Of a stretch of DNA of 64,000 nucleotides, positions 8,721-39,074 are shown piece by piece. The stretch is from contig CM097888.1 of assembly GCA_044892525.1 (NCBI GenBank), forward strand, positions 46,252,001 through 46,316,000, in the 5' to 3' direction. The notes under the pieces were generated by a model. It had not been told where the DNA came from, did no database searches, and saw only the letters and a program-made list of their open reading frames with translations. The first letter of the stretch is position 1. Each line of letters starts with the position of its first letter. A program made the translations under genes and the position numbers. This DNA comes from Schmidtea polychroa (Eukaryota).

Positions 8721-11700
8721 TGTTGGGCTGAGTCGAAGGGTAGTTGGGAATTAGGGAAACTGAACTAAAATAAAATAAAAAATAAAAACAAATAAATTGA
8801 CAAATAAAATAGAATAAAACATAAGAAAAACAATAATTAGAAAATAAGAATTAAAACAAAAATATAAAGATGAGAAAAATTAAAATAAGACAATAGAATG
8901 ACAGAAAACAACGTAAAATATAGTAAATACTAAGAAAATTAAGGAAAATAAATAAAAACATAATTTTAATAAAGAAAGTAAGAAGAAATAACTCGAAAAC
9001 AAAGAAAATAAATTAAATTAATAAAATTAAGCGGTACTCAATTCTAATTGGTCCGCGCAAACAAAAAATTAATATATAAGCAGGCATTAAAAACATAACA
9101 ATTACTGTTAATCAAACCACCTCAATAGGTAAGTGAAATTTAAATAACTGTGACGGTTAATCAAACCCACCTCAATAGGTAAATCTATTCTACGACGGAA
9201 CAGAACTCCAGCAACTAACGCACGATAACTCACGAGGACAATTCCAAGATTCAAAAGATTTTTACAGAACTAGACGACACTCGAGCATTAACTGATTCGA
9301 CATAGTACCCTTTTCGACTCAGCCCATACTTGTATCAATCATTCGGTAAGGATTTTTGATTGCTTATTTTGGATTTTTAAGTAATGCGTATAGTTCAATA
9401 ATATTCTTAATTTAAAAAATGGTTTTTCTTTTCGTTTGATGTTAGAATGCTTTATTTAAATTAATAATTTGCTTAATAATAAATGATTTGCTCGTTCAGA
9501 ATTATCGATCTTTTATGAATTAATTTTTATGAATTATTATTGGAGACCATTCAATTTGGCGAGAAACGTGGCGTTGAGATACTCTATGTCATGGTGTGAG
9601 GTGCCTTCGGGAGCTCCACCGGTGGACATAGGGTATTTCAATCACGCAGCTAGATTGGGCCGAAATGTGAGGGCTTCTTCACGGGTCCAATCGCTGAAGG
9701 TGCGACTAAAATCTATAGGTAAATGGGAGCCGAAATTGATAGTCATGTAGTGATTGAAAACAAAGATATGTAATAAAGGAATCGGAAAATTTTGATATAT
9801 TCGCGTAGTGATTGAGGGTGTCACACTATCGTCTTCGAATATCGGTTTTGCTAAGCCTAAATTTTCTCTATCATCAATGTAAGTCGTGTGTCAAAAATTG
9901 TTCAAACCTTAGTGAGGCTATCTGTGACATATCTTCGATGTTCATACTTTTCACTCAGAATCTGTTCCGACCAATTTTTAGCCTATGACCTTCGGAACTG
10001 TTATTCCGTTCATCTAAAAGTTCTCTTAAAGACATAGTTGCCAGGAAGTCAAAGTAGATTGCTTCATACAAGTATTAGGTTTACTCGAAATGACTGCTTG
10101 TAAATAAAGAGTAGAATCAGGTAAAATGATTTAATCCAAATAGTTATTCAGAATTGCATAAAACGAGTTCGTTCCAAATAAAAGTTTAAATTACATAAAA
10201 TGATTCGCTATCATAATTTTTTAGAATTTTATATAAAAGGAGTTACATACAATTAATTATCATAATCACATAAACTATTGGCATCAAATAATTTAAAATT
10301 GAAAAATGCAACCAATGCGAGCCACGAAAAATATATTTCTTCAAGTTAGCCGATGATCTTGTTAATTAAATATAAAATTCCAGTATTTCGTGGGGTTGGC
10401 AATCCAGCAGGGATAGGTAGAAATCCTCCAGCACTTAGAGAGTAGATCGATAAACTAGGTTTGAGGAATTAAAGACGAAAAATCCACCCTTGGAGCAAGC
10501 TATATCCAACATTTGCAATACAGATAATTATAATTTTTCCAATAATCCGGTGAGAATTAGTAAATCAGCGCCATATGCAGGAGAATTGTGAGTGATTACG
10601 CGATAGATAAAATTCTGAGAAAATGACATCTTGCAAACATTTAACACCTACAATTGTAGTATAATTAAGTGTGTGACAGCACACCCTGCATGCGTCAGCA
10701 GTTACAGACTCACCTAGTGGCCAAGTACAGTGGGCAAAGTCACACACGCCTCTACTCAGGAAAAATCCGACGAACATACCAGATGGAATTTCTATTAACC
10801 AATTAGACTACCGACAGGTATCATATTTCACCGCTCCGGATTAATAGTCAACCACCGGGCTGACATTTCCTTATCTACCTAGCAGGAATGGTCGGCTACT
10901 AGCTCACATTGATACTGTGCTCAGTTATCATAAAGACAATATTTTTTTTTTGTGCTAAACCCGATCGTAATTATGATTATTCTCTCTTTATTATCGTAGA
11001 ATGAATGGCACGGAAATTATGTCATTTTTGACATAATTATCATTAATATTAATGTCGAATATTATTAATAAATAATATTTAAACCAGGCAAAACACATGT
11101 GAATAATTAGAGAGAATGAATAAATAATTAAAAATTTAAATAGCCTTCCGTTTATCCTGTAGGAATTAATCAACAGACATTATGGACCCCTTTTCCATAG
11201 ATAGTCACTCGACCCCAGTACATGATACCCTCATCAAAATCACTCGTACGGGGGGAGAAGTCAACAAGGTAACTCGATTCTCGGTAAACGTGAAATAATG
11301 ACTTCAAGCGGATTGACTAAATAATCAATTTTCGTCGATCTAGAATTCCTCTCACTAATAGTATTACCTTCCTTTCCGTGTACGGAATCTGGTTTGATCG
11401 ATTTATCTTCTTATAATCAAAGACCCAAAAGGTATGAGAATCCATCGTGCAGTAGTACTTGTCTTGACTGGTAAACTCATATTTTTGTCTATGATCAGTA
11501 AAGTATGAATGGGGTCAGATGGTGACACTCCCGTTGAGTTAATTATTTTCATTTTTCATTTTTTTTCACAGTCACTCAAAAATGTTGCCAAATTCCAAGA
11601 CCGTTCTTCGACCTTGTTTTTCTTGCTCCGACAAGAATTCAATTATCAAAGAGCTCCAGGCCCAAATCGGAAAGCACAAAAGAAGGATAGATGAGTTGGA

Positions 11701-12893
11701 GGGGACATGGTTTAGTCCCACCCAGATGAAGGAGGCTCAGAAGAAGCTGCATCGAAGCGAGCACTGTAGAGACGCGTTGATTTCCGAGAGTCGGGCGCAG
11801 AGGAGCCTGATAAAAGAGCAGTCGGAGGCGCTGCACAAATTATACGTTGCAGCAGCTACAAGGAGGATCGCGAAGATCCCAATTAATGAAGCCAGTAATC
11901 TTTTCCCAGCACATCATGATATCTCTGGCGGATCTTCTTCTCCAGTCGGAAAGTCCTGCCATGGGTGCGTAGAGACCGAGCTCTCACCTAAAGAACCAGA
12001 AATCATCTTTACCGGAACCAGTAAAGCGTTACCTGTGATGGCATCTACCTCTGCAGCACCCCCGACCAATCCAACGGCATCGAAGCCAAAGCGTCGGCAA
12101 TTATCGAGAGCCGAACGCAAAAGGAAACAGCGGGAACGCGTAACCGCCAAACAGAACCAGCAATCGTCGGATCATCTAATCAAAGTCATCAACCCTCCTG
12201 CAGTAATCGATTTAGCATCAGTGATCTCAGGGCGAATCATCTCCGCCGCTGGGGTTTCCTGGGAGGAAAATGCCTCTGAATTTTTCGACTTGGAAGATCT
12301 GTTGGCAGACTCAGAGTGGGAGAAATGAGAACTTCTCCGTAACAAGTCTTCGTTCACTGAAATGACCCGAACATTGTCGGATAACATTTTTACCTTTGTT
12401 TCTTTTCCTGTGGTCGTAACTTTTATTGTATAGGTGTTAGGTATATTTGTGTGATAATCTTAATAATAAACCATTTTGTCTGCATACGTTTCCTTTTGTG
12501 TTCATCCTAGGACAGTTGAGTTGAAATTGGTGAAGGGTATTGAGAGTCATAAAACTAGGAGGAGCATTAGTCAGTTGGCAAACTCAGCTAGAAACATTGC
12601 GATGGGGCGACGGAATGAGTAGACGTAAGTCCTTCTATCGGCAGTCAGGGTTGGGAAGTCGAGGCCCCAGTAAGGAGTAGTCCGGAGGAGCTGGTTCACC
12701 TGCTTACTGGCGTCTCGCCGGCATAGCACAGTTCCAACGTGAAGCAATTCACGGGTGCTATGTTGGAGTGTAAGTTATGTACGGGTCCCGCTCGGCGATG
12801 ACCAAATAAATGATGGGCGAAATCGAGGTGGCATTCATCCTCTAGACTAAAGTTGCACTAGAAAGGGGTCATCCGAGTAGTGTACCCGCAACA
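8721..12893 (+). repeat. Putative long terminal repeat (~4,173 bp), shared between adjacent copies
   Basis: Starts TGTTGGG and ends CCCGCAACA, 7 nt before the PBS. Preceded by the hairpin AATTGCG-GGA-CGCAATT (8683-8699). Contains TATATAAG (~9073), a 26-bp direct repeat (9107/9156) and AATAAA (~12466). No canonical PPT, so the 5' edge is uncertain. Confidence 0.6.
11582..12328 (+). CDS. 248-aa orphan protein inside the putative LTR (N-terminal CxxC, coiled coil, basic segment, acidic C-terminus)
   Basis: Intact ORF preceded by a strong poly(T)-CACAG acceptor-like site. A diverged homolog at 58393-59144 (-) supports coding status. Confidence 0.8.
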   Translation: MLPNSKTVLRPCFSCSDKNSIIKELQAQIGKHKRRIDELEGTWFSPTQMKEAQKKLHRSEHCRDALISESRAQRSLIKEQSEALHKLYVAAATRRIAKIPINEASNLFPAHHDISGGSSSPVGKSCHGCVETELSPKEPEIIFTGTSKALPVMASTSAAPPTNPTASKPKRRQLSRAERKRKQRERVTAKQNQQSSDHLIKVINPPAVIDLASVISGRIISAAGVSWEENASEFFDLEDLLADSEWEK

Positions 12894-12900
12894 TAATTTT

Positions 12901-12918
12901 TGGGGGCTCAGCCGGGAT
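12901..12918 (+). promoter_or_regulatory. Primer-binding site, tRNA-Pro
   Basis: TGGGGGCTCAGCCGGGAT matches 16/18 of the classical tRNA-Pro PBS TGGGGGCTCGTCCGGGAT and follows ...CAACA-TAATTTT. Confidence 0.9.
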
Positions 12919-13216
12919 ATAGATTGAAATTTCCATTGGTCAGTGTAAACTGGATAAGGATGTTATTGAGTGAATTTCTGTCGAATAGAGTGAACTCACC
13001 GGGGTAAGTGATTCCAATGGGTTAGCGAGTGCAAATTGACTAATGCTTATCGAATCTTATTATAAATCACGAATAGAAAATAATAAAATTAAAAATATAA
13101 ATAAAGCAAATTTAATGATGGAGAAATAAGATAAAAGTAAAATAACGATAACGAGTTAGATAAGAGAATGTCCGACGAAACGAAGTCATATACTACTGAA
13201 ACATTTTTTTTTAGAC

Positions 13217-13702
13217 ATGACGGAATTCAATGATCAGATACAACAACTAATCAACTTCATAAACATCGAGAATGACTCCCTTAAAACGCTGACACAAAAG
13301 AGAGAAAGAATTAACATCATACTACTCCAAGCAATCGGGCAAACACCAGCCGTCCCCAACCACATGTTATTAGCCACAGGACTAAGTCACCCAGATGGGA
13401 AGGTAAACCCGGAAACCGTGTACCAATGGTATCAAGAGAGATTGAACCACCCAGCATTAAATCTTGATTATCAACGTATAAAAGATCCCTTAAATACCAT
13501 ATCAGATACAATCGAGCGGAAAATACAAGAAAAACTGACTCTACTACGAACTTGCCTTGCTTGTAAACTTCGTCCTATTCGCGTACTGTTTTTGCCGTGT
13601 GGACACCTCAGTCACTGCGAAGAATGCGGGAACGAGCTAACAAGATGCACGATATGTAAGCACGAGATAAAAGAAACTCATATGGTCTACTATGGTGAAT
13701 GA
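13217..13702 (+). CDS. RING-finger protein (IAP/MDM2-type C-terminal C3HC4 RING), putative E3 ligase, in the 5' leader
   Basis: CLACKLRPIRVLFLPCGHLSHCEECGNELTRCTICKHEI at the extreme C-terminus. No BIR motif seen. Confidence 0.85.
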   Translation: MTEFNDQIQQLINFINIENDSLKTLTQKRERINIILLQAIGQTPAVPNHMLLATGLSHPDGKVNPETVYQWYQERLNHPALNLDYQRIKDPLNTISDTIERKIQEKLTLLRTCLACKLRPIRVLFLPCGHLSHCEECGNELTRCTICKHEIKETHMVYYGE

Positions 13703-14338
13703 ATAGTGAAAGATACAGTAACATCTAGGAACATTGAATTTACACGGCTATTGAATGAGAATAAGTGTAATTGATGTGTGAAAATTGATTAAAGTTTTAA
13801 TTTTTATTTTTTATGGTGAATAAATTTTTGTTATGAACTGAGTAATTATGGCTTTTAATCCTATTTTATAATTGTTTTTTGAATCAAACGAAAAGAAAAC
13901 CGAACTAACGTGGAATTAGTCCCAATATAGGCTGTAAGGGTACAAACCGAGCCACCTTAGGGCGGTACGTTCTATCATACGATAAAACCAATTGGGAGGG
14001 GATAACCGATCAACCTAAGTGAGGAGCGTAGGGCGGGGTACCATCGCAAATGATGAGAAGTTTCTGCGGCATGACTGATCACCATGCCAATGTAGAAATG
14101 GATCATCGCGATCGTCGTGCGTTTTGAGCAAGGGGGGAAAGGGGACACACTCCCGTGCGGTAAAGATTAAGCCAACAAATTAAAAATAGACAGAGAAAAT
14201 GGTAATCTTGAGTAAAAGAAGAAAGAGAGAAGTAGAAGGATGCAGAGTAAAGAATGTTAAAGCCGAGCTGTAAAATAGTCCAGCCGGTCAAGGGAAACGA
14301 AAACTGAGCTGTGAAAAGTCCAGCCAGTTCGGAGATAT

Positions 14339-14637
14339 TAAGATCGAGTTGTTGAATAGTCCAACCGATCAGAAGGAGGAAGATTGAGCTGTTGAATAGT
14401 GCCAGCCAGTCGTAAGATCGAGTTGTTGAATAGTCCAACCGATCAGAAGGAGGAAGATTGAGCTGTTGAATAGTGCCAGCCAGTCGTAAGATCGAGTTGT
14501 TGAATAGTCCAACCGATCAGAAGGAGGAAGATTGAGCTGTTGAATAGTGCCAGCCAGTCGTAAGATCGAGTTGTTGAATAGTCCAACCGATCAGAAGGAA
14601 GAAGATTGAGCTGTTGAATAGTGCCAGCCAGTCGTAA
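14339..14637 (+). repeat. 4 x 74-bp tandem repeat (each unit two ~37-bp sub-repeats) in the leader
   Basis: Units start TAAGATCG at 14339, 14413, 14487 and 14561, with one substitution in unit 4. The core GAG(C/T)TGTTGAATAGT occurs twice per unit, and degenerate monomers lie at ~14265 and ~14305. Confidence 0.95.
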
Positions 14638-16008
14638 AGGCCTAGAAAAGCGAGAGATAGCAGTTAAGCTACAATGAGGTAATATTTAAATTACTAGTGA
14701 AATGGAATATTAAAGCTAGCTAGAACAAATAGAAGGTAATTACGAAAATTTGAGTTTAGAGAGGAAATAAACGAGCTCGTGGAAAAGATAATAAGATTAT
14801 AATGAAAAAGGAAAGGGAAGAAGGAAACGAATTAAAGAGATAATGGAAAATAAAGAATAGGCGAAACGATGATAATGAGTAAAGAGGAAAGTAACCAACT
14901 AATTAAAGGGACCCCAGTGAAGTAGAGAAACTCTACGGAATAATATTTTTCTTTTTTGGGCGAAGCGGGAGAATATATTTTATTGGTTCCAGAGTAGAAC
15001 CGAGTGAGATAATAGTAAATACGAAAAGTAAAACAGCGACAACCGCGCAAAAAGGACTAGGAAAACGAAAGGGGGGTAATAAGCAGTGACCGACAACGAC
15101 CTATTCCTATTATAAGTGATAAAAATAGATAATTATTACGACTCTATAGATAATTGTTACTACCCCATATAGATAATTTAAAATCGACGAAAATTTCGGG
15201 CTGATGGGAGATTATAACCCGCGGAAGTAATTGCATAAAAAATAGGGGAAGCATAAACAGAACCTAAAAGGTGTCTGTGTTTGAATGTTGCAGAAAGAAT
15301 GATGAAGTCGTGTAAGCAGATGCAACACGAGATCATTTTTTCATTTTAGATATCAAACCAATCCAGTCAACCAAGACAATCCAGAACCCGCACAAAAGGA
15401 ATTCGAAGAAATCGACAATCGACCAAGAATAAATCCATTCAGAACCCGCACCGAGAGACACAGCAACCGGAAGACTCCAGAACGGAAGAAGATACAGATA
15501 GCGACATCTCCAACTTCGAACGAATCATCGATATATTCAACCTCATAGTATTAGCAGCCATCTGTCAAGGACTAGTAAATCTCCTCAGAATCACAGTAGC
15601 AGATTCATACAGAATACTTATCGAAGGAAACACAATCAGAACTGAACTCGTCCAATTCAGTAGCCGCTAATTACCAAGAAGCGTAAGAAAGGAATCACGG
15701 ATAAACCCAATCTTAGATCTTCAAGTAAGCCAGGAGACGTATTATTTTCAGGAGACGAATTACAACAACTCAAAAGAGGACGATCTATTAAACATCAAAG
15801 AGGAATATCACAAGGATCAAGAAGAACCAATCAAGTACCTATATTTGACCAAGAAAATCTCGGATACACCCCTAGCCGATCTCGAAGCAGAGAAAGTCTG
15901 TCCGACATCACTAATAGTTTAGCAACGTCAACCGAGGAATTATCAGCCCAAAATTTAGTCACGTCACCGGATAATTTAAAAGAAACCGACGAATCTAGAA
16001 CACCAATC

Positions 16009-16914
16009 ATGACGAATGTCGTAAAAACCGACGAGTATAAAGAAAAGTTCCGAGGAGAACCGTTCAATGGAAATGCAAACAAGCTAGCAACGTTCATAAC
16101 TAATTTTGAAGTTTATATCACTGTGTGTGGATGGACACCCGAAGCAATTAGTAAAAGGATGCCGTTGTTTTTGTGCGATAGCGCATTAGAAGTATATTTA
16201 GAAGCTAAAGAGAGAGATACGAAATTAGAAAAGTGGGAAGATATCAAAACATTCCTGAAGAAAACCTTCGGAGCCAGTAAGCCAATCAACCAGGCGTTGG
16301 GCGAACTAGCAAATAGGAAACAAAGAGCAAATGAATCCATCACGTTATATGCCAGTGAATTGCGGAGATTGGCAAAGAAAGCAATGAATGGGAAATTACC
16401 AGAAGAAAATTTGATCGGTTATTTCATAGAGGGATTACGCCGAGAAGAAGTAAGAGCCTCAGTAGGTTGTCAAATGTGCAAAACATTAGAGGAAGCCATA
16501 GATTGGGCTACAAGATGCGAGCTCCACCTTCCAGCTCAAATGAATATTATGCAAGAGGAGGGAAGGATAATGACAGCAATAGCGAAAGCGGATAACGGAG
16601 ATAACAACAATCAAGAACCGAAAATGAATCAATTTATACCAGGAGCGCACCAAATTTTCAAACCACCACAAGGACGATCAAATGGGAATAATGGTAATCG
16701 TAACAACCCGAATAATGAGAACAATTTTAATAATCGACGAAATATGAACGATAACAAGCAGTGTCGAACATGCGGTAAACCAGGACACTGGGACAGAGAT
16801 TGCTATAGAAATTCAAATTGTAATCGTTGCGGACGGCGTGGACATACCGAAAATGTATGCCAATTGAGAGGTTGTTTTAACTGTGGTCAGCCAGGTCACA
16901 TCTCCAGAGATTGC
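16009..16914 (+). other. Gag domain: Ty3-type capsid plus three CCHC zinc knuckles
   Basis: FNG...FE.Y....W capsid pattern and the Q..NESI..YA.EL motif. CX2CX4HX4C at 16762, 16819 and 16873. Confidence 0.93.
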
Positions 16915-19900
16915 CGAGAAAGGGGCCAACAACAACGACCACCACAGCGAAATAATAATTATATGGCGAATCCGCAACGACAAAGTAACCCTAGCGAAGG
17001 AAAACAAATGAACGTTATGCAGGAAATCTCGCAGATGAAACAGATGATGCAACAAATGATGAGACCGAGACCGGAATCAGCACCACAACAAACCCAGAAT
17101 ATACGTATGATGAGGAGTACCGAAAATCTCAACAATTATGAAGTGCATCAACATGTACAAGAATGGCAAAGACTACAGGCCGAGGAAGAGAGGATAAAAC
17201 AAGAACGCAACCAACAACGACAAGAACAACCATTGCGAATTAATATGATGAAGTTAGTAAAAGACATGAAAAGCCAGTATTGCTACAATTACGGGAAAAA
17301 CCCAAGGGTAGTACCCATGACTGAACCAGAAAAGGTAACAGAAACAACAACGGAAATGAAAACAGAGAATTCAACCACGATTTTAAAAGGAAACCCGAGA
17401 ATTCAGAAAATATTCTGGAAAAAGATAAAAGATAAAATCGAAAAAGAACATAATAAAGCGAAAGCCGAGACAGAAGATGAAAATAACAAGAGCAAGGAAC
17501 AAACCAGTCAACTAAACCACCAAATGCTACAAGAATTAGAATCAGAAGAAACAACGATATTCGAAAGAAAGAAACTAAAGAGAGTACCAAGGATGAGAAA
17601 TTTGCAAATCAATATGATGAAAAGGACAAAAGATGTAGCATCGTCAGACGAAGAAGAAGACTATGTAAGTAGTTTGGGTGGAGAAATACTACAGCTAAAT
17701 GAAATAAGCGAACCTCCAAAAGGGGAAATCAAAGAGGAAGAAAGCGAAAGCGAGATAACAAGTGGAAGTGAAGACGAGGATATCGAAATAAAGTTGAGAA
17801 AAGCAAGGGAGGAAGCGATAAAACAGGTAGCCGAAATACTCCCGGCGGTAGTGAGAAACCAAGAGTTCATCGACGTAATACCATTCAGGCGATTCGTGCA
17901 AAAAGTGATGAAATTGGAAAGAAACGAGAAAGATTTAATACCAAACGAGGAAAAATCAATTATAAAAAAGTATATGGAAAAAATGAAGCAGGCCGATACC
18001 ACGCGGTATGTAATAAAAATCGGAACGAGCAGAGGACTTGAAAGAATGTGGATCAAAAGTACAGTCACCGACGAACTTTTCGATTGGATACGAGAACATT
18101 TGGGAAATTCGAGAAAGAAAGAATATCTGTATCAATACCAAGGAGAACAGATCAAACCAGATATGCACTTAGTAGATGCACTAATATGGCCAGGAGAAAC
18201 GCAAATACTGAAGTTGCATAAAGAAAAACAACCAGCCAACCTTTACGATTGGGCTAAAGATGCCAAGGCAGAATATGATTTTAATATCAAATTGAAATTA
18301 GAACAAATAAAACAATGTACTCTGAGACGAAACCTGGATAAGCTGATCAAACAAATTCAAGAACAAGTAGAAGACAACTGGGAATTACTCATCACCAGAC
18401 GAGCCCCAGCCATGTACGAACTAATGAGCCGATTGCGAGATACAGAAATGCTCCGGATGAGTGATTGGAGAACCATAAATTTGATCCACAAATATGGAAG
18501 GTTAAAAGAAACCCAGCCACAGAGGTTGGAAATAACCATATGGTTACCGAACGAAGAAAAACGACGAATAAAAATGAGCAATCGGAGTACAGTGGATGAC
18601 TTGGTATCAAAGATAAACCAAGAGATAACGGAAAAGGTACGTAGCGAAAGTAGTGATGGTATGGTGGATGATGTAGTCATGATGTACGATAAAATAATAT
18701 TACGAGCAGAAGACGACACCTCGTTAAGCGAATTGGGTATGTGGAACAATCATCAGATCATCAGGATAGTACCAATGGATGAATTTCGAACAAGAGATGT
18801 AATCTATCAAAAAGAAATACGAGACCGGATGAAAACGTTATATCAAAAATCTACAGAAATAATTGAAATCCACCAACAATGGTTAAAAGAAAAAGAACTA
18901 CAAGGAAAAATCACGAAATTAAGCACCAGATCCTGCAGACGAACCCCATGGGAAAGAGTGTGGAATGCAGAAAATAAGGAATGGGAAATCCGGAAAGGAA
19001 TCTTCGTAGAAACAGACATTGGTGAGACAGAAAGTGAATCGGAGGAAGAAGAAGAGGAACCTCCAGAATATGAAGAGGAAGCAAGGGGACAGACATCAGA
19101 TGACGAAAGCGAGACGGATGTCACATCAGAAAGCGAAAATGAAGCGAGACATATTCATGCAATGAGGAAAAAGGAACGTGAATATGCTGATATGGACGGC
19201 GAGGAAGCGACGGAAGCAAGAGAACGAGAAGAGAAAGAAAGATATAAACAATTAGGCGATATCTTAGCAATGGGAGCGAAAAATCAAAAACGCCAAGTAG
19301 TAGCGTTGGCTAACATCATCTTAAAGACATCAGAGAACATCCACAATCTGAGAGGAATGGCAAAGGCAATAGAGGAATACCGGCAATATAATGAATGGTA
19401 TCCAGAACAGCTAGAACAAATTATTCGAAAATGGAGAAATCAGGAATGGGCACAAGACACTCAGGAGAGGAATCACATCCGAATCAAGTATCCGGACAAG
19501 AGCATCGAGGAACTAGAGGTGCATCCAACAACAAAGATTAGAGAATTAAAAAAGAAATTAGCATATGAAACTCCATTCCATCTGCAACTGTTCGGAAAAT
19601 CACTAGACGATAATGCAGACGTCGGAATAACACCCATGAGATTGGAAGAGACAAATGTGTTAACAATGGCAGAAACGTTGGGAAAGCCGTTAAAAAGGAA
19701 AAGTAAAATTACTAAACCAACAAAAAGCAGTTTGAGTACTCCAAGTCCGAACAAAGCACCAAGTAAATCTAATGAAACTGAAGAAGTTGAAGAGATAATC
19801 CTGGAAGATAGTGACGATGAACCAGGAGAAAGATCACCGCTATTAGTAAGATGGCCGACAGGAGCCGAAATGTGGACTAATAACCAGCCATCAACGAGTT

Positions 19901-28847: not shown

Positions 28848-29849
28848 ATGATATTAATGATAATCATGCTCACCATGATAGAGTTAGTAACAGCTCATGG
28901 AGGGACGAGAACGATAAAAGAAACCAAAGAAGCGGAGAATCAAGACAGCAAAGAGGATGAGCTAAAACAAGAAAAGAAAAAGCAAGCACAAGAGCAGCAG
29001 TGGGAATTAAAGGAGGAATGGGACTTAAAGGAAAGGTGCATACTAGGAAGATGCATGTCTAGAGCGTATCAGAAACTAGTACTGATAAATGAGGACACAG
29101 AACCAATAACAGAAGTAAGAATACAAGAAGCATACCGAAATCGATACGGGAAGAGAATAACGAACGTTAAAGGAAAAGAGGTACACCTAGGAAAAGGTGG
29201 TGAAGTAGTAATAACGCAACTCCAACCTAGAAAAGAGCACAAAGTCTGTATTTCAAGATTAGGACCAGGTGAGAAATGCCATCAATACGTGACGCAGCAG
29301 CAGCCGCCGAAAGAATACACGGTTTGTATCTGGAGGAACGAATCAAAAAGGGAATGTCGACGATACCCGGGGAAAAGAGGAAAGAAAAGAAAAAACAACG
29401 ACGAAAAGGACGAAGGCGGAAAGCACAAGAAAACCGGTGAGGAAGCTCAGGACAACTATGTTTCGGAGGAAGAGATGGAAAAAATACAAAAGATGGCAAA
29501 GGAGGGTATGAACGAGGAAATAGCAAGAATACGAGAGATGATGAAAGGAAATGGCAAAAGAAGGAACGAGAAAAGTACAGAAGCAATAGTAACATTAACA
29601 AACAAGGAGAAACCAGAAAATATAAGCGTGAGGCAGATGATGTGGATTAGTGGGATAATAATAACAGGAGCCTTCCTAATCATAACGGGGGGAACAATAA
29701 AAATAATTAAAGATAAACGACATCGCGGAGAACTAGAGATGACCCGAATCAGAAATTTCCAACATCGAGTGAAACGACCAAGTGATACCAAACAAGAACA
29801 GTGGGTGGAGGCCTGGAACGCTCAGCGCCCTCCAAACTCACGTATATAG
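28848..29849 (+). CDS. Copy of the type I membrane protein
   Basis: Identical to 2667..3668. Confidence 0.75.
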   Translation: MILMIIMLTMIELVTAHGGTRTIKETKEAENQDSKEDELKQEKKKQAQEQQWELKEEWDLKERCILGRCMSRAYQKLVLINEDTEPITEVRIQEAYRNRYGKRITNVKGKEVHLGKGGEVVITQLQPRKEHKVCISRLGPGEKCHQYVTQQQPPKEYTVCIWRNESKRECRRYPGKRGKKRKNNDEKDEGGKHKKTGEEAQDNYVSEEEMEKIQKMAKEGMNEEIARIREMMKGNGKRRNEKSTEAIVTLTNKEKPENISVRQMMWISGIIITGAFLIITGGTIKIIKDKRHRGELEMTRIRNFQHRVKRPSDTKQEQWVEAWNAQRPPNSRI

Positions 29850-30009
29850 AAAGGAATATGACTGTATATAATTGTAAAAAGTAAGTATATCTTATGTATA
29901 TAATAGCACTATATCCTTATATAAGCGCGGTATTAATATTATACAATAACGGGAACCATAAAATAAAATTAACTTTAAATAAGAGTTGAAAAGTGTATAT
30001 AAATTAAGA

Positions 30010-30369
30010 ATGGATCAAGGAAATAACGAAATGAACCACAATACAGTAACTGAAGAATTATGGAAGCAACAATGTGCCGTATTAGCACAATTAGTGTCCA
30101 ATTTGCAAGAACAAGGATTGACGATGCACAGAAACCTAATCGAGAGTATGAATAGAGGATTTAGTTATTTGAAGATAATTGAAGACCAGAGGATGAAAAT
30201 CGAACAAATGCAAAGAGAGATAGAGAGGATAACCCAATATAGCCGTAGACAGGAAATTGAACTAAACAGAATGATGGAGGAAGCAGAACAGACAGAAATA
30301 GAAGACTGGTCGGACTGGCTAATGAATAGAGAGGAGAGCGGACACGAAGCCGACTCTTCCGAACCCTAA
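30010..30369 (+). CDS. Copy of the 119-aa coiled-coil protein
   Basis: Identical to 3829..4188. Confidence 0.65.
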   Translation: MDQGNNEMNHNTVTEELWKQQCAVLAQLVSNLQEQGLTMHRNLIESMNRGFSYLKIIEDQRMKIEQMQREIERITQYSRRQEIELNRMMEEAEQTEIEDWSDWLMNREESGHEADSSEP

Positions 30370-30454
30370 ACCAAACCTAGCTTAAAATGTAAATAATTGT
30401 AAATAAAATATCGAACCTGTATCGATAAGGACTATATGTACATATAATTATAGA

Positions 30455-31843
30455 ATGGATAAACGACAAAGAGAAGAGTTCAGAGAGATTGTCGAGCAAA
30501 TACGAAAATCTACAACGATCAGAATACACAAACATGTTATGTGCGGAATATGTGAAAAGTTGTTAAAGGAACCTCACCAAACTCAATGTGGATGCAGAGT
30601 ATGTAAGGAATGTATCAGTGAAGCAATAAAGAATAGACCACAGCGGTGCCCGGTGTGTAAAGAGACACTAATATCGAGTTTAGAAGACACTAACGAGGAT
30701 AAAGCCGCAGTGAAAGATATGTTAAACACCAACCTGGGATGCAAAAATGCCCCATGCGAATGGAAAGGAGTAATCTGGAAGGTAGTACAACATATGGGAG
30801 AATGTATGTACAGAATTGGCCAGTGTGAAAGGTGCCATAAAACCATTCGAGCAAGCGAAGAAAAAGAGCATCAAAGGCAGTGTGAAGAGAGATTGGAAAG
30901 ATGTGAACATTGTGGAGAAATAGACACGTGGAAAAATCTCACCCTCAAACATCACAATGTCCAAGAGGAGAAAGTATGTGCAGAATTCAGTGGGGAATGC
31001 CCAAACGGATGTAACCAAGGGGAAATAATGAAAGTGGCACAGCATCTAAGGGAATGTGAAAGGAAAAGAATGACATGTGTACTAGGTAAATGGGGTTGTC
31101 AGAAACTACTACACCGAGGGGAGTTACCACATCATTTAGTAGAAAATGCTTCAACCCACGCAGAAATGTGGTCGACTGCGTTACAAGAAAGCGAAGAGAA
31201 AATAAAACAAATGGAGATAGAGATAACATCGTTGAAAGTGTTAGTCAAAGAACTACTAGAAGAAAGGGAAGCGTTCGAAGAAGCCCGAGCAAACATAAAG
31301 ATGCAAATAAACCGAATAGAAATCAGTAATAATCAGGCCAAGGAGCTACATCAGAAAATACGGGAAATAAATCTAAATGAAGTAATACCAACAGCACCCT
31401 ACATATGGAAAATAACGGGAGTAAAAGAAAGAATACGAAAAGCAAAAACCGGAGAAGAGACAAGAATAACAAGTCCTGCATTCCATTCTTGGAAAAATGG
31501 GTACAAAATGAAAATGAAGATATATCCCAACGGGGACGGAACCGGATTAGATACGCACTTTTCGATTTTCTTTCTGTTATGTAAAGGGGAATACGACGAA
31601 ATAATAGAGTGGCCGTTCCAGGCAAAAATCGATATTGCACTAATGAATGACCGAAGCATCCACGAACAAAGCTTCAAGACAACTGGAAACCAAATGTGTT
31701 ACCAGAGACCTACGGAAGAAGAAGGATCAGCAACAGGAGCACCTACGTTCATCCTACAACAAAAAGTAGAAGATATGGCAAGAAATGACACGGTGTATAT
31801 CAAGATGACCGTGAGGAAAGAGGAGAAGGGTAGAACGGAGTAA
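30455..31843 (+). CDS. Copy of the TRAF-family protein
   Basis: Identical to 4274..5662. Confidence 0.95.
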   Translation: MDKRQREEFREIVEQIRKSTTIRIHKHVMCGICEKLLKEPHQTQCGCRVCKECISEAIKNRPQRCPVCKETLISSLEDTNEDKAAVKDMLNTNLGCKNAPCEWKGVIWKVVQHMGECMYRIGQCERCHKTIRASEEKEHQRQCEERLERCEHCGEIDTWKNLTLKHHNVQEEKVCAEFSGECPNGCNQGEIMKVAQHLRECERKRMTCVLGKWGCQKLLHRGELPHHLVENASTHAEMWSTALQESEEKIKQMEIEITSLKVLVKELLEEREAFEEARANIKMQINRIEISNNQAKELHQKIREINLNEVIPTAPYIWKITGVKERIRKAKTGEETRITSPAFHSWKNGYKMKMKIYPNGDGTGLDTHFSIFFLLCKGEYDEIIEWPFQAKIDIALMNDRSIHEQSFKTTGNQMCYQRPTEEEGSATGAPTFILQQKVEDMARNDTVYIKMTVRKEEKGRTE

Positions 31844-32036
31844 CCAATCGAATAATGTTGTACATAATAATCTGTATATATCGGTGTATATAACCAATAA
31901 AATATTATATAATAATAGTATGAAAACCCTAAATACGAAAACCCAAAAATGATGCGAAAATTCCCAAAGAAACAGTAGATAATGAATAAATTACTTTTTC
32001 ATAATAAAAAGATTAATCGATGTCTATGATTTAGAG

Positions 32037-33092
32037 ATGACACAAGAGAAACTAACCGAAACAGCGATAGCCCCAACCAATGTCAACAAGACACAAATTC
32101 CCCGAGAACATAACAAAAAATGGAACAAAGTAATGTCCCAACTAACTAATCTCACCCGAAATCACATCGAAGAAGCTAGAGAGGATGAGAATAGTCAATA
32201 CCAATGGTTAATACACAACTTAAGAGCGGAAGCAGATGCATGCAAAAGAGCATCAAAATGGGCGTCACTAGAAAATACCCGCCAAGAAGCACACAGCCAC
32301 TACTTAAAGCAGCTAGTGCAGGAAGCGAGAAAGAGACTTACCGATGAGAACACCAAGCGCGAAGCGGAAAAACAAATAGAAGAAAGGAAAATGATGCACT
32401 TAGTGGCAGAAGCGAGAAAATGGAAAAGACAAAGCAATGAAATGAAAAAAGAGATGAAAGAATTGCCCATGAGACTCGGATATGAGAGCGAACAGGGCAA
32501 ATGGGAGGAGAACTTAATAATAAAGGAAGAATTGAAACGGTTGAGAAAGGTCGCCGCCCGAAGTCAAACCTGGCAAACAAAGGCTATGGAATTTGAGCGA
32601 CATTTGGCAATAAAATGCGACATAAGAGAGCACGAGAATGCCGCAATGGAAGAGATGATAACCCAACAAGCAGGACGGATTGTGGAATTAGTAAATCAGG
32701 TCGAAGAGATGAAAAGAGACCTTAATGGATTACAAGGATCGTTAGAACAAAGAAACATGGTCCTAGCGGGAAAAAACAGAAAATTAGAAAACGAGAGGAA
32801 AATGTATACCGAAAATATCAAAAACTTGGAAATAGAAATTGAAAAATGGAAGGGCGACGAGAAAATCAAGGCCTTAGATAGACAAGTAGAGGCGAAAGAC
32901 GAAGAGACAAGGTATCTCACTTATCTGCTCGACGAAGAGCTGAATAACACTCGAGCTCTAAGAGACGAAGTTAGTGAATTGAGAGCTCAAATCCCCCAAT
33001 ATTACCTACCCTATGACCCTATTGCGATACAGCTGCATCCAGCGGTCGATAGTGACGAAGGTTATGTGGGACAGGAGGAAACCTTCGTATAA
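32037..33092 (+). CDS. Copy of the 351-aa coiled-coil protein
   Basis: Identical to 5856..6911. Confidence 0.75.
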   Translation: MTQEKLTETAIAPTNVNKTQIPREHNKKWNKVMSQLTNLTRNHIEEAREDENSQYQWLIHNLRAEADACKRASKWASLENTRQEAHSHYLKQLVQEARKRLTDENTKREAEKQIEERKMMHLVAEARKWKRQSNEMKKEMKELPMRLGYESEQGKWEENLIIKEELKRLRKVAARSQTWQTKAMEFERHLAIKCDIREHENAAMEEMITQQAGRIVELVNQVEEMKRDLNGLQGSLEQRNMVLAGKNRKLENERKMYTENIKNLEIEIEKWKGDEKIKALDRQVEAKDEETRYLTYLLDEELNNTRALRDEVSELRAQIPQYYLPYDPIAIQLHPAVDSDEGYVGQEETFV

Positions 33093-33205
33093 GGGTGAAT
33101 AAAAAGATAAAAACAAAAATCGGGACGTATATCCCAAACAAAAAAATTAAAGTATTGTAAAAGTATTCAAGGGACTGTAACCCGAACTATTAAAATTTTA
33201 TATAA

Positions 33206-33967
33206 ATGCATAAGTATAAGTCGCACTATAGCGCACCATTAACTGTACATATTACAGATATGAAAATCGAGGAAATAATAGAAATTACGAGCGACGTGGA
33301 AGAGGGAGAGATTGAGGCAGAAACAACAGAAACACAAACGTTAAAGGCCAAGTTACGGGAAGAGAGGGACGAAAACGAGAGACTAGTAAACAATTATATA
33401 GAAGACCGAAAAATGATTAAAATACTAAAGAAGGAGTGCGAAGCGTTAGGAGAAATAAAGAGAGAAGCTGAAGAGAAGAATGAATGGTTGCAAGAACAAC
33501 GAACACGAGGAAGAAACTGGGAAAAGATTGCAGAGGAACTATGGCAAGAGAGGGCAAGCTTCAAGGCAGAAGAAGTAATCCAAGATTATTGGAAAACAGA
33601 GGCGAAAGAACACCAAATAACTATAAATAAATTAAATCGACAATTGGAGGAAAAACAACGAGAAAGTGAGGAAATGAAGAAATGGATTCGCAAGTACCAA
33701 GAGATCGAGAGAAAACAACAACAACAACAACAACGAAACCTTTCGCAGGAAAACGAACAAGATTTCCTACAAATCGAACTAAAAAGGAATCTCGACAAAA
33801 AACGGGAAGAAATTAAGAGACTGAAAAAGGAGATAAGGCACATGAAAAGGGAGGCCCGTGAAAAGAACAGACAGTTGGAAATGCTGCCCGAGTTAAGACA
33901 CAGAGTCATTAAAGCGGAATCCACCCTGATGAGAATCGCCGAAAATAACCCAAACCAGAATCATTAA
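33206..33967 (+). CDS. Copy of the 253-aa coiled-coil protein
   Basis: Identical to 7025..7786. Confidence 0.72.
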   Translation: MHKYKSHYSAPLTVHITDMKIEEIIEITSDVEEGEIEAETTETQTLKAKLREERDENERLVNNYIEDRKMIKILKKECEALGEIKREAEEKNEWLQEQRTRGRNWEKIAEELWQERASFKAEEVIQDYWKTEAKEHQITINKLNRQLEEKQRESEEMKKWIRKYQEIERKQQQQQQRNLSQENEQDFLQIELKRNLDKKREEIKRLKKEIRHMKREAREKNRQLEMLPELRHRVIKAESTLMRIAENNPNQNH

Positions 33968-34023
33968 ATTAAGGGTCACTAAAACCAATTGTAAATAAAC
34001 CATAATGAATGTATAATAGTATC

Positions 34024-34578
34024 ATGCGAGGCGAGATGATGATAACAATGACGGTATTGATGATTCTGACGGAGAACAAACAAGTAAACGCCCAACCGAA
34101 AATCGTACGAGATTACCGAAATCAAAATCAAGAACCTAAATGAGAATCCGGCCAATGCACATACCCTATGACAGTAAAAATCCATATCATCCAAACCATT
34201 CAATCAACCCGATAACACATCAACAACATCCAAACAATGTGTAAAAAGAATCCCATTTGTAAAATGATAAACAAACAAATCCTCGAACAAATCCAACAAT
34301 TCGACCAGTTGGAACAACAAATGCAACAAGAGAATTTTGAAAATCTTGTAGAAAAGCCAAAAACACCTCCCGAAATCAATGACACCCATTATCTCATATA
34401 TGTGGTGATCGCAGAAACCCTCCTCCTATGTCTACCAATAATCATGAAGATTTACGAAGTTAGAAATAAATGTAGAATCTCGACATCAATAAGAGTAACC
34501 TCGAACAGAAATCCTCAAGAAATGCCACTGACAAATCCTAACCCAACCCCAGTCCGACCTCGAATCCCGAGTAATTAA
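34024..34578 (+). pseudogene. Copy of the stop-interrupted membrane protein frame
   Basis: Identical to 7843..8397. Confidence 0.55.
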
Positions 34579-34901
34579 CCAATCCAGCCGAATTCTAACA
34601 GTCAGACCTATCTCAACATCAATACCCAAACCAACCAACAACCGCCAGCAGAAGCATCAAATGGTTAACAGTTCATAAACTCCAACTCAAATATTGGTGT
34701 TATCATATGTAGAAACTTTTATTGTATATACAAACTATCACCTTAAGTGATACTTGCTTGGTCTTGTTTTGACCTATATCTTAGAATAAAATTGTTTTTG
34801 TTATTGTAGTATAATTATTTCGATATATCCTTTTTATGAATGCCTGAAGTAAGATAACTATGCAATTGCGGGACGCAATTTTGATGGGTCCCCGAGTGAT
34901 T

Positions 34902-37900
34902 TGTTGGGCTGAGTCGAAGGGTAGTTGGGAATTAGGGAAACTGAACTAAAATAAAATAAAAAATAAAAACAAATAAATTGACAAATAAAATAGAATAAAA
35001 CATAAGAAAAACAATAATTAGAAAATAAGAATTAAAACAAAAATATAAAGATGAGAAAAATTAAAATAAGACAATAGAATGACAGAAAACAACGTAAAAT
35101 ATAGTAAATACTAAGAAAATTAAGGAAAATAAATAAAAACATAATTTTAATAAAGAAAGTAAGAAGAAATAACTCGAAAACAAAGAAAATAAATTAAATT
35201 AATAAAATTAAGCGGTACTCAATTCTAATTGGTCCGCGCAAACAAAAAATTAATATATAAGCAGGCATTAAAAACATAACAATTACTGTTAATCAAACCA
35301 CCTCAATAGGTAAGTGAAATTTAAATAACTGTGACGGTTAATCAAACCCACCTCAATAGGTAAATCTATTCTACGACGGAACAGAACTCCAGCAACTAAC
35401 GCACGATAACTCACGAGGACAATTCCAAGATTCAAAAGATTTTTACAGAACTAGACGACACTCGAGCATTAACTGATTCGACATAGTACCCTTTTCGACT
35501 CAGCCCATACTTGTATCAATCATTCGGTAAGGATTTTTGATTGCTTATTTTGGATTTTTAAGTAATGCGTATAGTTCAATAATATTCTTAATTTAAAAAA
35601 TGGTTTTTCTTTTCGTTTGATGTTAGAATGCTTTATTTAAATTAATAATTTGCTTAATAATAAATGATTTGCTCGTTCAGAATTATCGATCTTTTATGAA
35701 TTAATTTTTATGAATTATTATTGGAGACCATTCAATTTGGCGAGAAACGTGGCGTTGAGATACTCTATGTCATGGTGTGAGGTGCCTTCGGGAGCTCCAC
35801 CGGTGGACATAGGGTATTTCAATCACGCAGCTAGATTGGGCCGAAATGTGAGGGCTTCTTCACGGGTCCAATCGCTGAAGGTGCGACTAAAATCTATAGG
35901 TAAATGGGAGCCGAAATTGATAGTCATGTAGTGATTGAAAACAAAGATATGTAATAAAGGAATCGGAAAATTTTGATATATTCGCGTAGTGATTGAGGGT
36001 GTCACACTATCGTCTTCGAATATCGGTTTTGCTAAGCCTAAATTTTCTCTATCATCAATGTAAGTCGTGTGTCAAAAATTGTTCAAACCTTAGTGAGGCT
36101 ATCTGTGACATATCTTCGATGTTCATACTTTTCACTCAGAATCTGTTCCGACCAATTTTTAGCCTATGACCTTCGGAACTGTTATTCCGTTCATCTAAAA
36201 GTTCTCTTAAAGACATAGTTGCCAGGAAGTCAAAGTAGATTGCTTCATACAAGTATTAGGTTTACTCGAAATGACTGCTTGTAAATAAAGAGTAGAATCA
36301 GGTAAAATGATTTAATCCAAATAGTTATTCAGAATTGCATAAAACGAGTTCGTTCCAAATAAAAGTTTAAATTACATAAAATGATTCGCTATCATAATTT
36401 TTTAGAATTTTATATAAAAGGAGTTACATACAATTAATTATCATAATCACATAAACTATTGGCATCAAATAATTTAAAATTGAAAAATGCAACCAATGCG
36501 AGCCACGAAAAATATATTTCTTCAAGTTAGCCGATGATCTTGTTAATTAAATATAAAATTCCAGTATTTCGTGGGGTTGGCAATCCAGCAGGGATAGGTA
36601 GAAATCCTCCAGCACTTAGAGAGTAGATCGATAAACTAGGTTTGAGGAATTAAAGACGAAAAATCCACCCTTGGAGCAAGCTATATCCAACATTTGCAAT
36701 ACAGATAATTATAATTTTTCCAATAATCCGGTGAGAATTAGTAAATCAGCGCCATATGCAGGAGAATTGTGAGTGATTACGCGATAGATAAAATTCTGAG
36801 AAAATGACATCTTGCAAACATTTAACACCTACAATTGTAGTATAATTAAGTGTGTGACAGCACACCCTGCATGCGTCAGCAGTTACAGACTCACCTAGTG
36901 GCCAAGTACAGTGGGCAAAGTCACACACGCCTCTACTCAGGAAAAATCCGACGAACATACCAGATGGAATTTCTATTAACCAATTAGACTACCGACAGGT
37001 ATCATATTTCACCGCTCCGGATTAATAGTCAACCACCGGGCTGACATTTCCTTATCTACCTAGCAGGAATGGTCGGCTACTAGCTCACATTGATACTGTG
37101 CTCAGTTATCATAAAGACAATATTTTTTTTTTGTGCTAAACCCGATCGTAATTATGATTATTCTCTCTTTATTATCGTAGAATGAATGGCACGGAAATTA
37201 TGTCATTTTTGACATAATTATCATTAATATTAATGTCGAATATTATTAATAAATAATATTTAAACCAGGCAAAACACATGTGAATAATTAGAGAGAATGA
37301 ATAAATAATTAAAAATTTAAATAGCCTTCCGTTTATCCTGTAGGAATTAATCAACAGACATTATGGACCCCTTTTCCATAGATAGTCACTCGACCCCAGT
37401 ACATGATACCCTCATCAAAATCACTCGTACGGGGGGAGAAGTCAACAAGGTAACTCGATTCTCGGTAAACGTGAAATAATGACTTCAAGCGGATTGACTA
37501 AATAATCAATTTTCGTCGATCTAGAATTCCTCTCACTAATAGTATTACCTTCCTTTCCGTGTACGGAATCTGGTTTGATCGATTTATCTTCTTATAATCA
37601 AAGACCCAAAAGGTATGAGAATCCATCGTGCAGTAGTACTTGTCTTGACTGGTAAACTCATATTTTTGTCTATGATCAGTAAAGTATGAATGGGGTCAGA
37701 TGGTGACACTCCCGTTGAGTTAATTATTTTCATTTTTCATTTTTTTTCACAGTCACTCAAAAATGTTGCCAAATTCCAAGACCGTTCTTCGACCTTGTTT
37801 TTCTTGCTCCGACAAGAATTCAATTATCAAAGAGCTCCAGGCCCAAATCGGAAAGCACAAAAGAAGGATAGATGAGTTGGAGGGGACATGGTTTAGTCCC

Positions 37901-39074
37901 ACCCAGATGAAGGAGGCTCAGAAGAAGCTGCATCGAAGCGAGCACTGTAGAGACGCGTTGATTTCCGAGAGTCGGGCGCAGAGGAGCCTGATAAAAGAGC
38001 AGTCGGAGGCGCTGCACAAATTATACGTTGCAGCAGCTACAAGGAGGATCGCGAAGATCCCAATTAATGAAGCCAGTAATCTTTTCCCAGCACATCATGA
38101 TATCTCTGGCGGATCTTCTTCTCCAGTCGGAAAGTCCTGCCATGGGTGCGTAGAGACCGAGCTCTCACCTAAAGAACCAGAAATCATCTTTACCGGAACC
38201 AGTAAAGCGTTACCTGTGATGGCATCTACCTCTGCAGCACCCCCGACCAATCCAACGGCATCGAAGCCAAAGCGTCGGCAATTATCGAGAGCCGAACGCA
38301 AAAGGAAACAGCGGGAACGCGTAACCGCCAAACAGAACCAGCAATCGTCGGATCATCTAATCAAAGTCATCAACCCTCCTGCAGTAATCGATTTAGCATC
38401 AGTGATCTCAGGGCGAATCATCTCCGCCGCTGGGGTTTCCTGGGAGGAAAATGCCTCTGAATTTTTCGACTTGGAAGATCTGTTGGCAGACTCAGAGTGG
38501 GAGAAATGAGAACTTCTCCGTAACAAGTCTTCGTTCACTGAAATGACCCGAACATTGTCGGATAACATTTTTACCTTTGTTTCTTTTCCTGTGGTCGTAA
38601 CTTTTATTGTATAGGTGTTAGGTATATTTGTGTGATAATCTTAATAATAAACCATTTTGTCTGCATACGTTTCCTTTTGTGTTCATCCTAGGACAGTTGA
38701 GTTGAAATTGGTGAAGGGTATTGAGAGTCATAAAACTAGGAGGAGCATTAGTCAGTTGGCAAACTCAGCTAGAAACATTGCGATGGGGCGACGGAATGAG
38801 TAGACGTAAGTCCTTCTATCGGCAGTCAGGGTTGGGAAGTCGAGGCCCCAGTAAGGAGTAGTCCGGAGGAGCTGGTTCACCTGCTTACTGGCGTCTCGCC
38901 GGCATAGCACAGTTCCAACGTGAAGCAATTCACGGGTGCTATGTTGGAGTGTAAGTTATGTACGGGTCCCGCTCGGCGATGACCAAATAAATGATGGGCG
39001 AAATCGAGGTGGCATTCATCCTCTAGACTAAAGTTGCACTAGAAAGGGGTCATCCGAGTAGTGTACCCGCAACA
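34902..39074 (+). repeat. Second copy of the putative LTR
   Basis: TGTTGGG at 34902 and CCCGCAACA ending at 39074. Confidence 0.6.
37763..38509 (+). CDS. Copy of the 248-aa LTR ORF
   Basis: Identical to 11582..12328. Confidence 0.8.
   Translation: MLPNSKTVLRPCFSCSDKNSIIKELQAQIGKHKRRIDELEGTWFSPTQMKEAQKKLHRSEHCRDALISESRAQRSLIKEQSEALHKLYVAAATRRIAKIPINEASNLFPAHHDISGGSSSPVGKSCHGCVETELSPKEPEIIFTGTSKALPVMASTSAAPPTNPTASKPKRRQLSRAERKRKQRERVTAKQNQQSSDHLIKVINPPAVIDLASVISGRIISAAGVSWEENASEFFDLEDLLADSEWEK

Follow-up and report, generated by a model that had tools for sequence, protein, structure and literature searches.

Burro elements and the Schmidtea polychroa array

Burro elements are the largest known long terminal repeat (LTR) retroelements and fill much of planarian genomes, which are more than 70% A/T and contain Burro elements of over 30 kb (PMC11410931). 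The Burro of Schmidtea mediterranea (GYPSM1, Jurka 2007; Grohme et al. 2018) was described by Arkhipova and Yushenova (2019, PMC6431247) as an element whose internal region can reach 25 kb and whose length exceeds 30 kb when the LTRs are included. BURRO1 has been described as highly abundant and active and is de-repressed on SMEDWI-2 loss; in differentiated tissues, Burro elements become expressed upon loss of PIWI (PMC8532177). They also cluster at synteny breakpoints (PMC11410931). In this work, a 64,000-nt window of the Schmidtea polychroa contig CM097888.1 (the whole stretch of DNA analyzed, to which all coordinates below refer) was examined, and domain searches were performed with Pfam, PDB sequences, and AlphaFold2 (AF2) models submitted to Foldseek. 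The region very probably represents a Burro-type giant Ty3/gypsy (Metaviridae) LTR retroelement of a dugesiid planarian, arranged as a head-to-tail array with shared LTRs.

Self-comparison of the window revealed that positions 1-17138 and 26182-43319 are 100% identical (0 differences over 17,138 bp), and directly past 17138/43319 the identity drops to background. Every open reading frame (ORF) recurs at a spacing of one repeat period, 26,181 bp. This period is the exact sum of an internal region and an LTR, the members of the array sharing their LTRs. The region is a head-to-tail array of a giant element, which enters the window from the left and stops at 43319 within gag. One unit is composed of an internal region of 22,008 bp and a putative LTR of 4173 bp, giving an LTR-to-LTR length of 30,354 bp. 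All features of the element described below lie on the plus strand. Reading from left to right, there are the 3' part of an upstream internal region (1-8720, identical to 26182-34901), carrying the C-terminal part of the polyprotein gene (to 2304) and the downstream accessory ORFs; putative LTR copy A (8721-12893), with TGTTG...CAACA ends; the complete internal region (12894-34901); putative LTR copy B (34902-39074), identical to copy A; and the 5' part of a third internal region (39075-43319), with a site resembling a primer-binding site (PBS), a RING ORF, a tandem repeat, and the first 377 gag codons, beyond which the sequence is unrelated. The PBS-like 18-mer, starting with TGG, is located 7 nt past each putative LTR end; these two sites (12901-12918 and 39082-39099) are its only occurrences in the window.

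The first-pass annotation of this DNA had taken 8721-39074 for a single LTR-to-LTR unit with a PBS. The PBS-like site was borne out, and the stated ends carry the terminal motifs; the repeat, in turn, proved to be 17,138 bp long rather than a pair of 4.2-kb LTRs, and the interval corresponds to one period plus one LTR of the array. Within one period, no shorter internal direct repeats that could serve as alternative true LTRs were found, the only repeat being a 74-bp tandem repeat in 4 copies of 99% identity (14339-14637, with degenerate copies on either side, at 14265-14711; second copy of the block at 40520-40818).

The internal region is dominated by one intact ORF (16009-28485) of 12,477 nt, encoding a 4158-aa polyprotein; the longest open run in 200 shuffles of this region reached 171 codons. 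It comprises, in order, gag, a spacer, ubiquitin-like and Bcl-2-like domains, an envelope glycoprotein (Env), protease (PR), reverse transcriptase (RT), RNase H (RH), integrase (IN), and ankyrin repeats. Gag (16159-16917) matches Retrotrans_gag (E 2e-11) and Ty3_capsid (E 1e-5) at aa 51-145 and includes three CCHC knuckles (aa 247-303), readable in the translation as three CX2CX4HX4C motifs. The aspartic protease of retroviral type (23197-23472, aa 2397-2488; Pfam RVP E 2e-8) retains DTG, and the RT and RNase H segment (24136-25188; aa 2710-2868, RVT_1 E 1e-35, and aa 2931-3060, RT_RNaseH E 6e-39) retains YIDD. The integrase (25510-26079, aa 3168-3357) has both the H2C2 zinc domain (Integrase_H2C2 E 4e-20) and the catalytic core (rve E 2e-12). 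This PR-RT-RNase H-IN order, together with a capsid-type Gag and CCHC knuckles, is that of Ty3/gypsy elements (Metaviridae). Judged from its reading frames, the element was shown to have all parts of the LTR-retroelement replication cycle present and open, plus a complete membrane-anchored fusogen, and such a fully open copy provides a clean reference for the way in which a retroelement can have a single ORF with a coding length of 12.5 kb.

The remaining polyprotein domains are of very different certainty. The ankyrin repeats at the C-terminus (26932-28182, aa 3642-4058) are unambiguous in Pfam (Ank_2 E 7e-21) and among PDB sequences (ankyrin, E 7e-17). A possible ubiquitin-like domain (19474-19689, aa about 1156-1227) gave weak matches (Pfam E 0.075; ubiquitin variants in PDB E 0.12), and the same domain is found at the same position in the metagenomic relative L001 (E 0.003). 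Directly upstream of Env, there is a Bcl-2-like helical domain with a GGW motif (20341-20688, aa about 1445-1560), for which Pfam Bcl-2 scores E 0.09, and E 1e-3 at the same position of L001. The GGWK sequence is invariant among the aligned relatives. The AF2 model of this domain, built on a 3-sequence alignment, is all-helical, with a low predicted local distance difference test (pLDDT) value of 56; as supporting evidence only, the top 50 of 50 Foldseek matches of the model in PDB were Bcl-2 family proteins (E 0.1-0.5). The Bcl-2-like assignment is therefore a weak one, drawn from several individually weak, agreeing lines (Pfam, GGWK, and the Foldseek matches of a low-confidence model). Finally, the cysteine-free, highly charged spacer between gag and env (aa about 400-1400) has neither a detectable Pfam family nor a PDB sequence match.

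The comparison with Burro-1 revealed a close correspondence of plan. ORF1 of GYPSM1/Burro-1 encodes 4,873 aa, including a Gag with three CCHC knuckles, and the motifs reported for the element are Smc, MATH_TRAF_C, Ubi2/SUMO-like, BCL2, RING, dUTPase (between PR and RT), BIR, ankyrin, and tandem repeats (PMC6431247). Its env, which matches mononegavirus fusion glycoproteins, is located in frame between gag and pol, and this was called "the first case" of such an arrangement (PMC6431247). Likewise, the window contains a giant gypsy-like element, with an internal region of more than 20 kb and, LTRs included, a length of about 30 kb, in an AT-rich host genome; one huge ORF with Retrotrans_gag, three CCHC knuckles, ubiquitin-like and BCL2-like domains, an in-frame env, and PR-RT-RH-IN; and, in addition, ankyrin, RING, and TRAF/MATH motifs and tandem repeats. 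The GC content of the flank (25-29%) fits a planarian genome. A Burro-like element of Dugesia (Girardia) tigrina also shares the polyprotein plan with the window element and, as here, has MATH_TRAF on a separate accessory ORF; it differs in having a 5,140-aa ORF1, two CCHC knuckles, and a midasin-like segment, and its TRAF ORF lies upstream of ORF1, whereas that of the window element is downstream of pol (PMC6431247).

Of the claims made from the sequence at the outset, those of a giant enveloped Ty3/gypsy retroelement and an intact 12.5-kb ORF agree with our results (PR-RT-RH-IN order, an intact Env, and a number of accessory genes of host-like type, all in the same orientation), and the suggestion of a possibly undescribed lineage does not, as domain content and order match the published planarian Burro (PMC6431247). 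The window element is of an already described kind, i.e., a catalogued Burro family or a sibling of one, and it may be an uncatalogued Burro family. What is added here is the assignment of Env to the class III fold, nearest to chuvirus-like glycoproteins; a gag-env-pol layout common to many uncharacterized contigs; and the tandem arrangement, which is relevant to the dating of insertions by LTR identity and to assembly quality. These additions leave the category of the element unchanged.

Other described systems share single traits with the window element. The so-called errantiviruses with an Env of herpes simplex virus glycoprotein B (gB) type also combine a Ty3/gypsy pol with a class III fusion glycoprotein, but they are 5-10 kb in size, have env as a separate ORF after pol, and carry no apoptosis or ubiquitin cargo (PMC13524379). 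Such gB-type Env proteins are widespread in metazoan env-carrying gypsy elements, according to a survey that covered the gag-pol-env order only (Chary and Hayashi 2026, PMC13524379). Mosquito BEL/Pao elements with a Chuviridae-like glycoprotein encode a Jingchuvirales-type protein of the same Pfam family as the window Env (Dezordi et al. 2020, PMC7642597); they belong to another superfamily, however, with env as a separate gene and a normal size (PMC7642597). Ogre of legumes is likewise a giant Ty3/gypsy element with multi-kb LTRs, but it resides in plants, owes its size mostly to LTRs and non-coding DNA, and has neither env nor signaling cargo (PMC6431247).

It should be stressed that several observations weigh against the assignment to a Burro array. 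The element was assigned from its architecture and the genome composition, not from sequence identity to Burro references. Its ORF1 is shorter than that of Burro-1 (4158 vs. 4,873 aa, and 5,140 aa in D. tigrina), and MATH_TRAF, which is inside ORF1 in Burro-1, resides here on a separate downstream ORF. Neither the dUTPase nor the BIR reported for Burro-1 was detected by Pfam, with a cut-off of E 1 for aa 2480-2720 and of E 0.01 for other parts, and these two domains were not presented as universal in the family (PMC6431247). As regards the LTRs, their boundaries are plausible, having been set by the terminal motifs and the PBS-like site only; there is no clear purine-rich tract directly upstream of 34902; and both putative LTRs are bordered by element sequence, so that a host junction and a target site duplication are not visible in the window. 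Moreover, the array ends within gag, 4,245 bp past the LTR, and not at an LTR terminus. A tRNA scan and an Rfam scan of the window, aimed at a partner for the PBS, yielded neither tRNA genes nor relevant Rfam matches.

The fusion glycoprotein

The Env region (20854-22728) lies in frame within the polyprotein and matches the Pfam family PF24664 "Monjiviricetes_fusion" at aa about 1612-2207 with an E-value of 8e-70. It contains the only strong transmembrane (TM) segment of the polyprotein (22540-22596, aa 2178-2196), a membrane anchor followed by a short tail, and is preceded by a hydrophobic, methionine-rich stretch (20809-20853, aa 1601-1615), which ends in a small-residue motif and is a candidate internal signal/anchor for Env. 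Among 1.84 billion representatives, 1056 Env homologs were found. The nearest of them are embedded in polyproteins of 1300-3200 aa, and the others are stand-alone glycoproteins of about 650 aa. All 14 cysteines that are near-invariant in the homologs are present in the window copy.

The AF2 model of Env, built on a 103-sequence alignment, reached a pLDDT of 86.6. In Foldseek searches, it matched herpesvirus gB with E 3e-14 and a probability of 1.0, the alignment covering about 640 columns. Its matches to the glycoproteins of chu-like, qin-related, and xinmo viruses were stronger, with E-values of 1e-38 to 1e-34. The profile of the 103 sequences also matches gB weakly among PDB sequences, where the single Env sequence gave no match. 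On this evidence, Env is a complete class III fusogen of the Jingchuvirales type, closest to chuvirus-like glycoproteins.

Two other origins of this gene were considered and rejected. An endogenous chuvirus (Jingchuvirales) would be expected to bring other chuvirus genes (N, L polymerase) or to persist as a stand-alone glycoprotein remnant; here, the glycoprotein is the only chuvirus gene and is embedded in a gag-pol ORF. An integrated pararetrovirus or DNA virus does not agree with the presence of an integrase, gag, and LTR-type termini.

Origin of the array

Simple unequal recombination between LTRs explains the shared LTRs of the array but not its end inside gag. We suppose that the array could have arisen either in two steps, with another rearrangement after unequal LTR recombination, or by integration of multimeric DNA. 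It should be pointed out that the 100% identity of the LTRs is uninformative about age, because the adjoining 13 kb are equally identical, which may reflect tandem duplication or an effect of assembly. The intactness of the ORFs is the only argument for a young copy.

The same lack of differences over 17,138 bp leads to the alternative that the element is real and the array is not, i.e., that a single 30-kb element or dispersed identical copies were mis-joined during assembly. This explanation appears rather unlikely. It would account for the abrupt end in gag at 43319, with unrelated sequence beyond; a run of 130 N within the window (51987-52116) points in the same direction; and Burro elements are a known obstacle to planarian genome assembly (PMC11410931; PMC13238120). 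The sequence, however, bears no mark of a join, as neither N nor a low-complexity stretch was found at 26181/26182 or at 43319. Furthermore, tandem arrays of LTR elements are known as a genuine product of recombination.

If the array is real, it may have been formed by non-integrase insertion, or by rearrangement, of multimeric DNA with one LTR per unit, instead of by unequal crossing-over between LTRs. A period of exactly one internal region plus one LTR is what such DNA would give, and so is a right end located 4,245 bp past the LTR, in gag, with no LTR terminus. However, the second non-LTR junction predicted by this mechanism was not seen, the left end of the array being outside the window; a later deletion or rearrangement would produce the same picture; and no microhomology is evident at the junction. 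We regard this as a rather improbable origin. A nested insertion as the cause of the break at 43319 was also tried and found no support, since comparison of 43320-64000 with the element, made to locate the rest of the third copy or another LTR, gave only a diverged paralog of the LTR ORF.

The putative LTRs have two further peculiarities. Each encloses an intact 248-aa ORF (11582-12328 and 37763-38509), with an acceptor-like pyrimidine tract and AG upstream and AATAAA about 135 nt downstream; a protein encoded by an LTR would be unusual. At the 5' end of the LTR, there is also an exact 13-nt inverted repeat (34906-34918/35494-35506, and 8725-8737/9313-9325; chance expectation 0.03), which brackets about 575 bp of A-rich low-complexity sequence. 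This may be either a minor insertion nested in the LTR or part of the structure of U3.

Relatives, accessory ORFs and the right flank

None of six element proteins tested had an exact match in a collection of 15 billion proteins. Among 5.8 billion clusters, the closest Pol proteins are 43-49% and the closest Env proteins 36-40% identical, and all of them come from metagenome contigs. The metagenomic relatives compared here (P0121/L003, L001, L002, and L004-L008) show 41-47% identity to the window element in Pol and 25-40% in Env. They are shorter than the window element, but the gag-env-pol order is common to them, and often one ORF of 3400-3900 aa is found. In L001, a 20-kb contig, the order is ubiquitin-like, Bcl-2 (E 1e-3), Env, PR, ankyrin, and RT-RH-IN; P0121/L003 has a single 3865-aa ORF with CCHC, Env, PR, RT, RH, and IN; and L002, L004 (3419 aa), L005 (3700 aa), and L006-L008 follow the gag-env-pol order wherever covered. 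Judging from these translations, the gag-env-pol layout is a lineage trait and the cargo differs among branches. An ORF for an exonuclease of the RNase_T/DEDD type (E 1e-5 to 1e-3) was noticed 3' of pol in three contigs (L003 11946-12911, L004 10617-12107, and L005 12169-13473), in place of the TRAF and RING ORFs of the window element.

The distance to all these proteins, and the absence of the element's own proteins from the 15-billion-protein collection, are the grounds on which the element could be regarded as a lineage distinct from Burro, i.e., an undescribed giant env-bearing clade of Metaviridae, whose layout is either convergent with that of Burro or derived from shared ancestry; the failure to find dUTPase, BIR, and MATH within ORF1 fits this as well. 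In our opinion, it is an improbable reading. The collection evidently lacks planarian transposon ORFs, and so the lack of a near match says little. The combination of three CCHC knuckles, Ubi, Bcl-2, an in-frame env, pol, ankyrin, TRAF, and RING is specific to the Burro description, which allows variation between species (PMC6431247), and the composition of the flank fits planarians. Within the Burro-type assignment, a more detailed proposal can be put forward tentatively, although we consider it more doubtful than probable. The window element would be an uncatalogued Burro sublineage belonging to a wide clade of Metaviridae that has not yet been named. In this clade, translation in frame with gag and pol would produce a chuvirus/gB-type class III fusogen from between them, and an internal signal/anchor after the Bcl-2-like domain would insert it into the endoplasmic reticulum (ER), with branches having acquired different cargo (TRAF, IAP-RING, Bcl-2, and ankyrin here and in L001; RNase_T in L003-L005).

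Apart from the polyprotein gene, 9 distinct sense-strand ORFs of at least 100 aa are present within 8721-39074, in agreement with the about nine counted in the first-pass annotation. One of them (13217-13702; second copy at 39398-39883) is located in the leader, past the PBS-like site and ahead of gag, and encodes a 161-aa protein with a C-terminal RING of inhibitor of apoptosis (IAP) type and without BIR (Pfam zf-C3HC4_3 E 4e-11; RINGs of cIAP1/2 and XIAP in PDB E 4e-10). The others described below, except for the 248-aa ORF of the LTR, follow the polyprotein gene. In the region 28486-34700, the sense strand has four open runs, of 253-478 codons, a length not approached by chance, as all of 500 shuffles stayed below 250; on the minus strand, no open run exceeds 139 codons. 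The best defined product is a 462-aa TRAF homolog (30455-31843) with RING, zinc fingers, a coiled coil, and MATH/TRAF-C, supported by Pfam (MATH E 3e-26, and RING) and by PDB sequences (TRAF3/1/2 E 1e-28; the RING-zinc-finger region of TRAF6 E 2e-14); in protein searches, it had a single match, of 37% identity.

The first ORF past the polyprotein gene (28848-29849; 333 aa from the first ATG, or 372 aa from a TTG at 28731) has a signal-like N-terminal segment and one C-terminal TM segment and no homolog in Pfam at relaxed thresholds. It is a candidate type I membrane protein, and a second envelope or a receptor-modulating protein is possible. A 113-aa ORF (34237-34578) encodes a small membrane protein with one strongly hydrophobic TM segment. 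There are also ORFs of 127 aa (29986-30369), 351 aa (32037-33092), and 253 aa (33206-33967). For the ORFs of 372/333, 127, 351, 253, 113, and 248 aa, Pfam searches, also at relaxed thresholds, revealed no credible family. The initial comparison of this repertoire with that of a large DNA virus was overstated, as the cargo consists of a few domains of apoptosis and ubiquitin signaling plus unassigned ORFs.

This cargo belongs to the element, since all ORFs have the same orientation, their A-rich skew is that of gag-pol (A 40-41%, T 20-22% of the sense strand across gag-pol and the accessory ORFs, smaller in the LTR), unlike the flank beyond 43319 (25-29% GC, without the skew), and the polyprotein ORF itself includes two of the cargo domains. 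It is highly improbable that an ordinary-sized gypsy element lies here beside host genes, with a 26-kb segmental duplication mimicking cargo: the whole 26-kb period is repeated, so that element and flank cannot be told apart by the repeat alone, but ankyrin, Bcl-2-like, ubiquitin-like, and Env domains share one 4158-aa ORF with gag and pol, the separate ORFs are all sense, intronless, and of gag-pol composition (A 40%/T 20-21%) unlike the true flank, the internal region without any separate ORF already exceeds 12 kb, and relatives and published Burro elements carry the same domain classes.

A Burro-type element of this structure would presumably be transcribed from the LTR, with reverse transcription primed at the PBS-like site. 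Cleavage of the 4158-aa polyprotein by the aspartic protease that it contains would then yield Gag, the regulatory (ubiquitin-like, Bcl-2-like, and ankyrin) domains, the class III fusogen, RT, RNase H, and IN. The position of Env in frame between gag and pol is the reason for ascribing an internal signal/anchor role to the hydrophobic stretch. By analogy with polyproteins that have internal signal sequences, the Env ectodomain may enter the ER lumen, and the TM segment may return the chain to the cytosol for the synthesis of PR-RT-IN. Alternatively, a spliced env mRNA could be used, with a start at a methionine of the hydrophobic stretch. The element also lets one ask how an envelope protein arises midway in a cytosolic polyprotein.

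The separate ORFs most likely act on host apoptosis and on ubiquitin/TRAF signaling; the TRAF homolog, the IAP-type RING, the two membrane proteins, and the other ORFs could thereby keep the expressing cells alive. Taken together, the Bcl-2-like, TRAF, IAP-RING, ubiquitin-like, and ankyrin modules would modulate host cell-death and ubiquitin signaling. The open copy points to host pathways possibly manipulated by the element, i.e., TRAF, an IAP-type ubiquitin ligase, and Bcl-2.

Several features of the right flank deserve a mention. Directly past the break in gag, there are about 550 bp (43320-43900) of 40% GC, unlike the rest of the window, after which the AT-rich flank begins. Remnants of a hAT-type DNA transposase were found on the minus strand at 48308-50304, in at least three ORF pieces; a BED-type zinc-finger-like motif was recognized by eye in one piece and a motif resembling the hAT C-terminal dimerization region in another, and the 322-aa piece had no Pfam match. 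The diverged paralog of the 248-aa LTR ORF (58393-59129, minus strand; 59% aa identity over the first 88 residues) is situated in a GC-rich island (55% GC), on the strand opposite to that of the element, and contains at least one frameshift; it may be the source gene or what is left of an LTR from a different Burro family. For two low-complexity ORFs (60685-61584, 299 aa, and 61808-62572, 254 aa, both on the minus strand), neither a Pfam family nor similarity to the element ORFs was found, and together with the paralog of the LTR ORF they may be parts of another degraded element.

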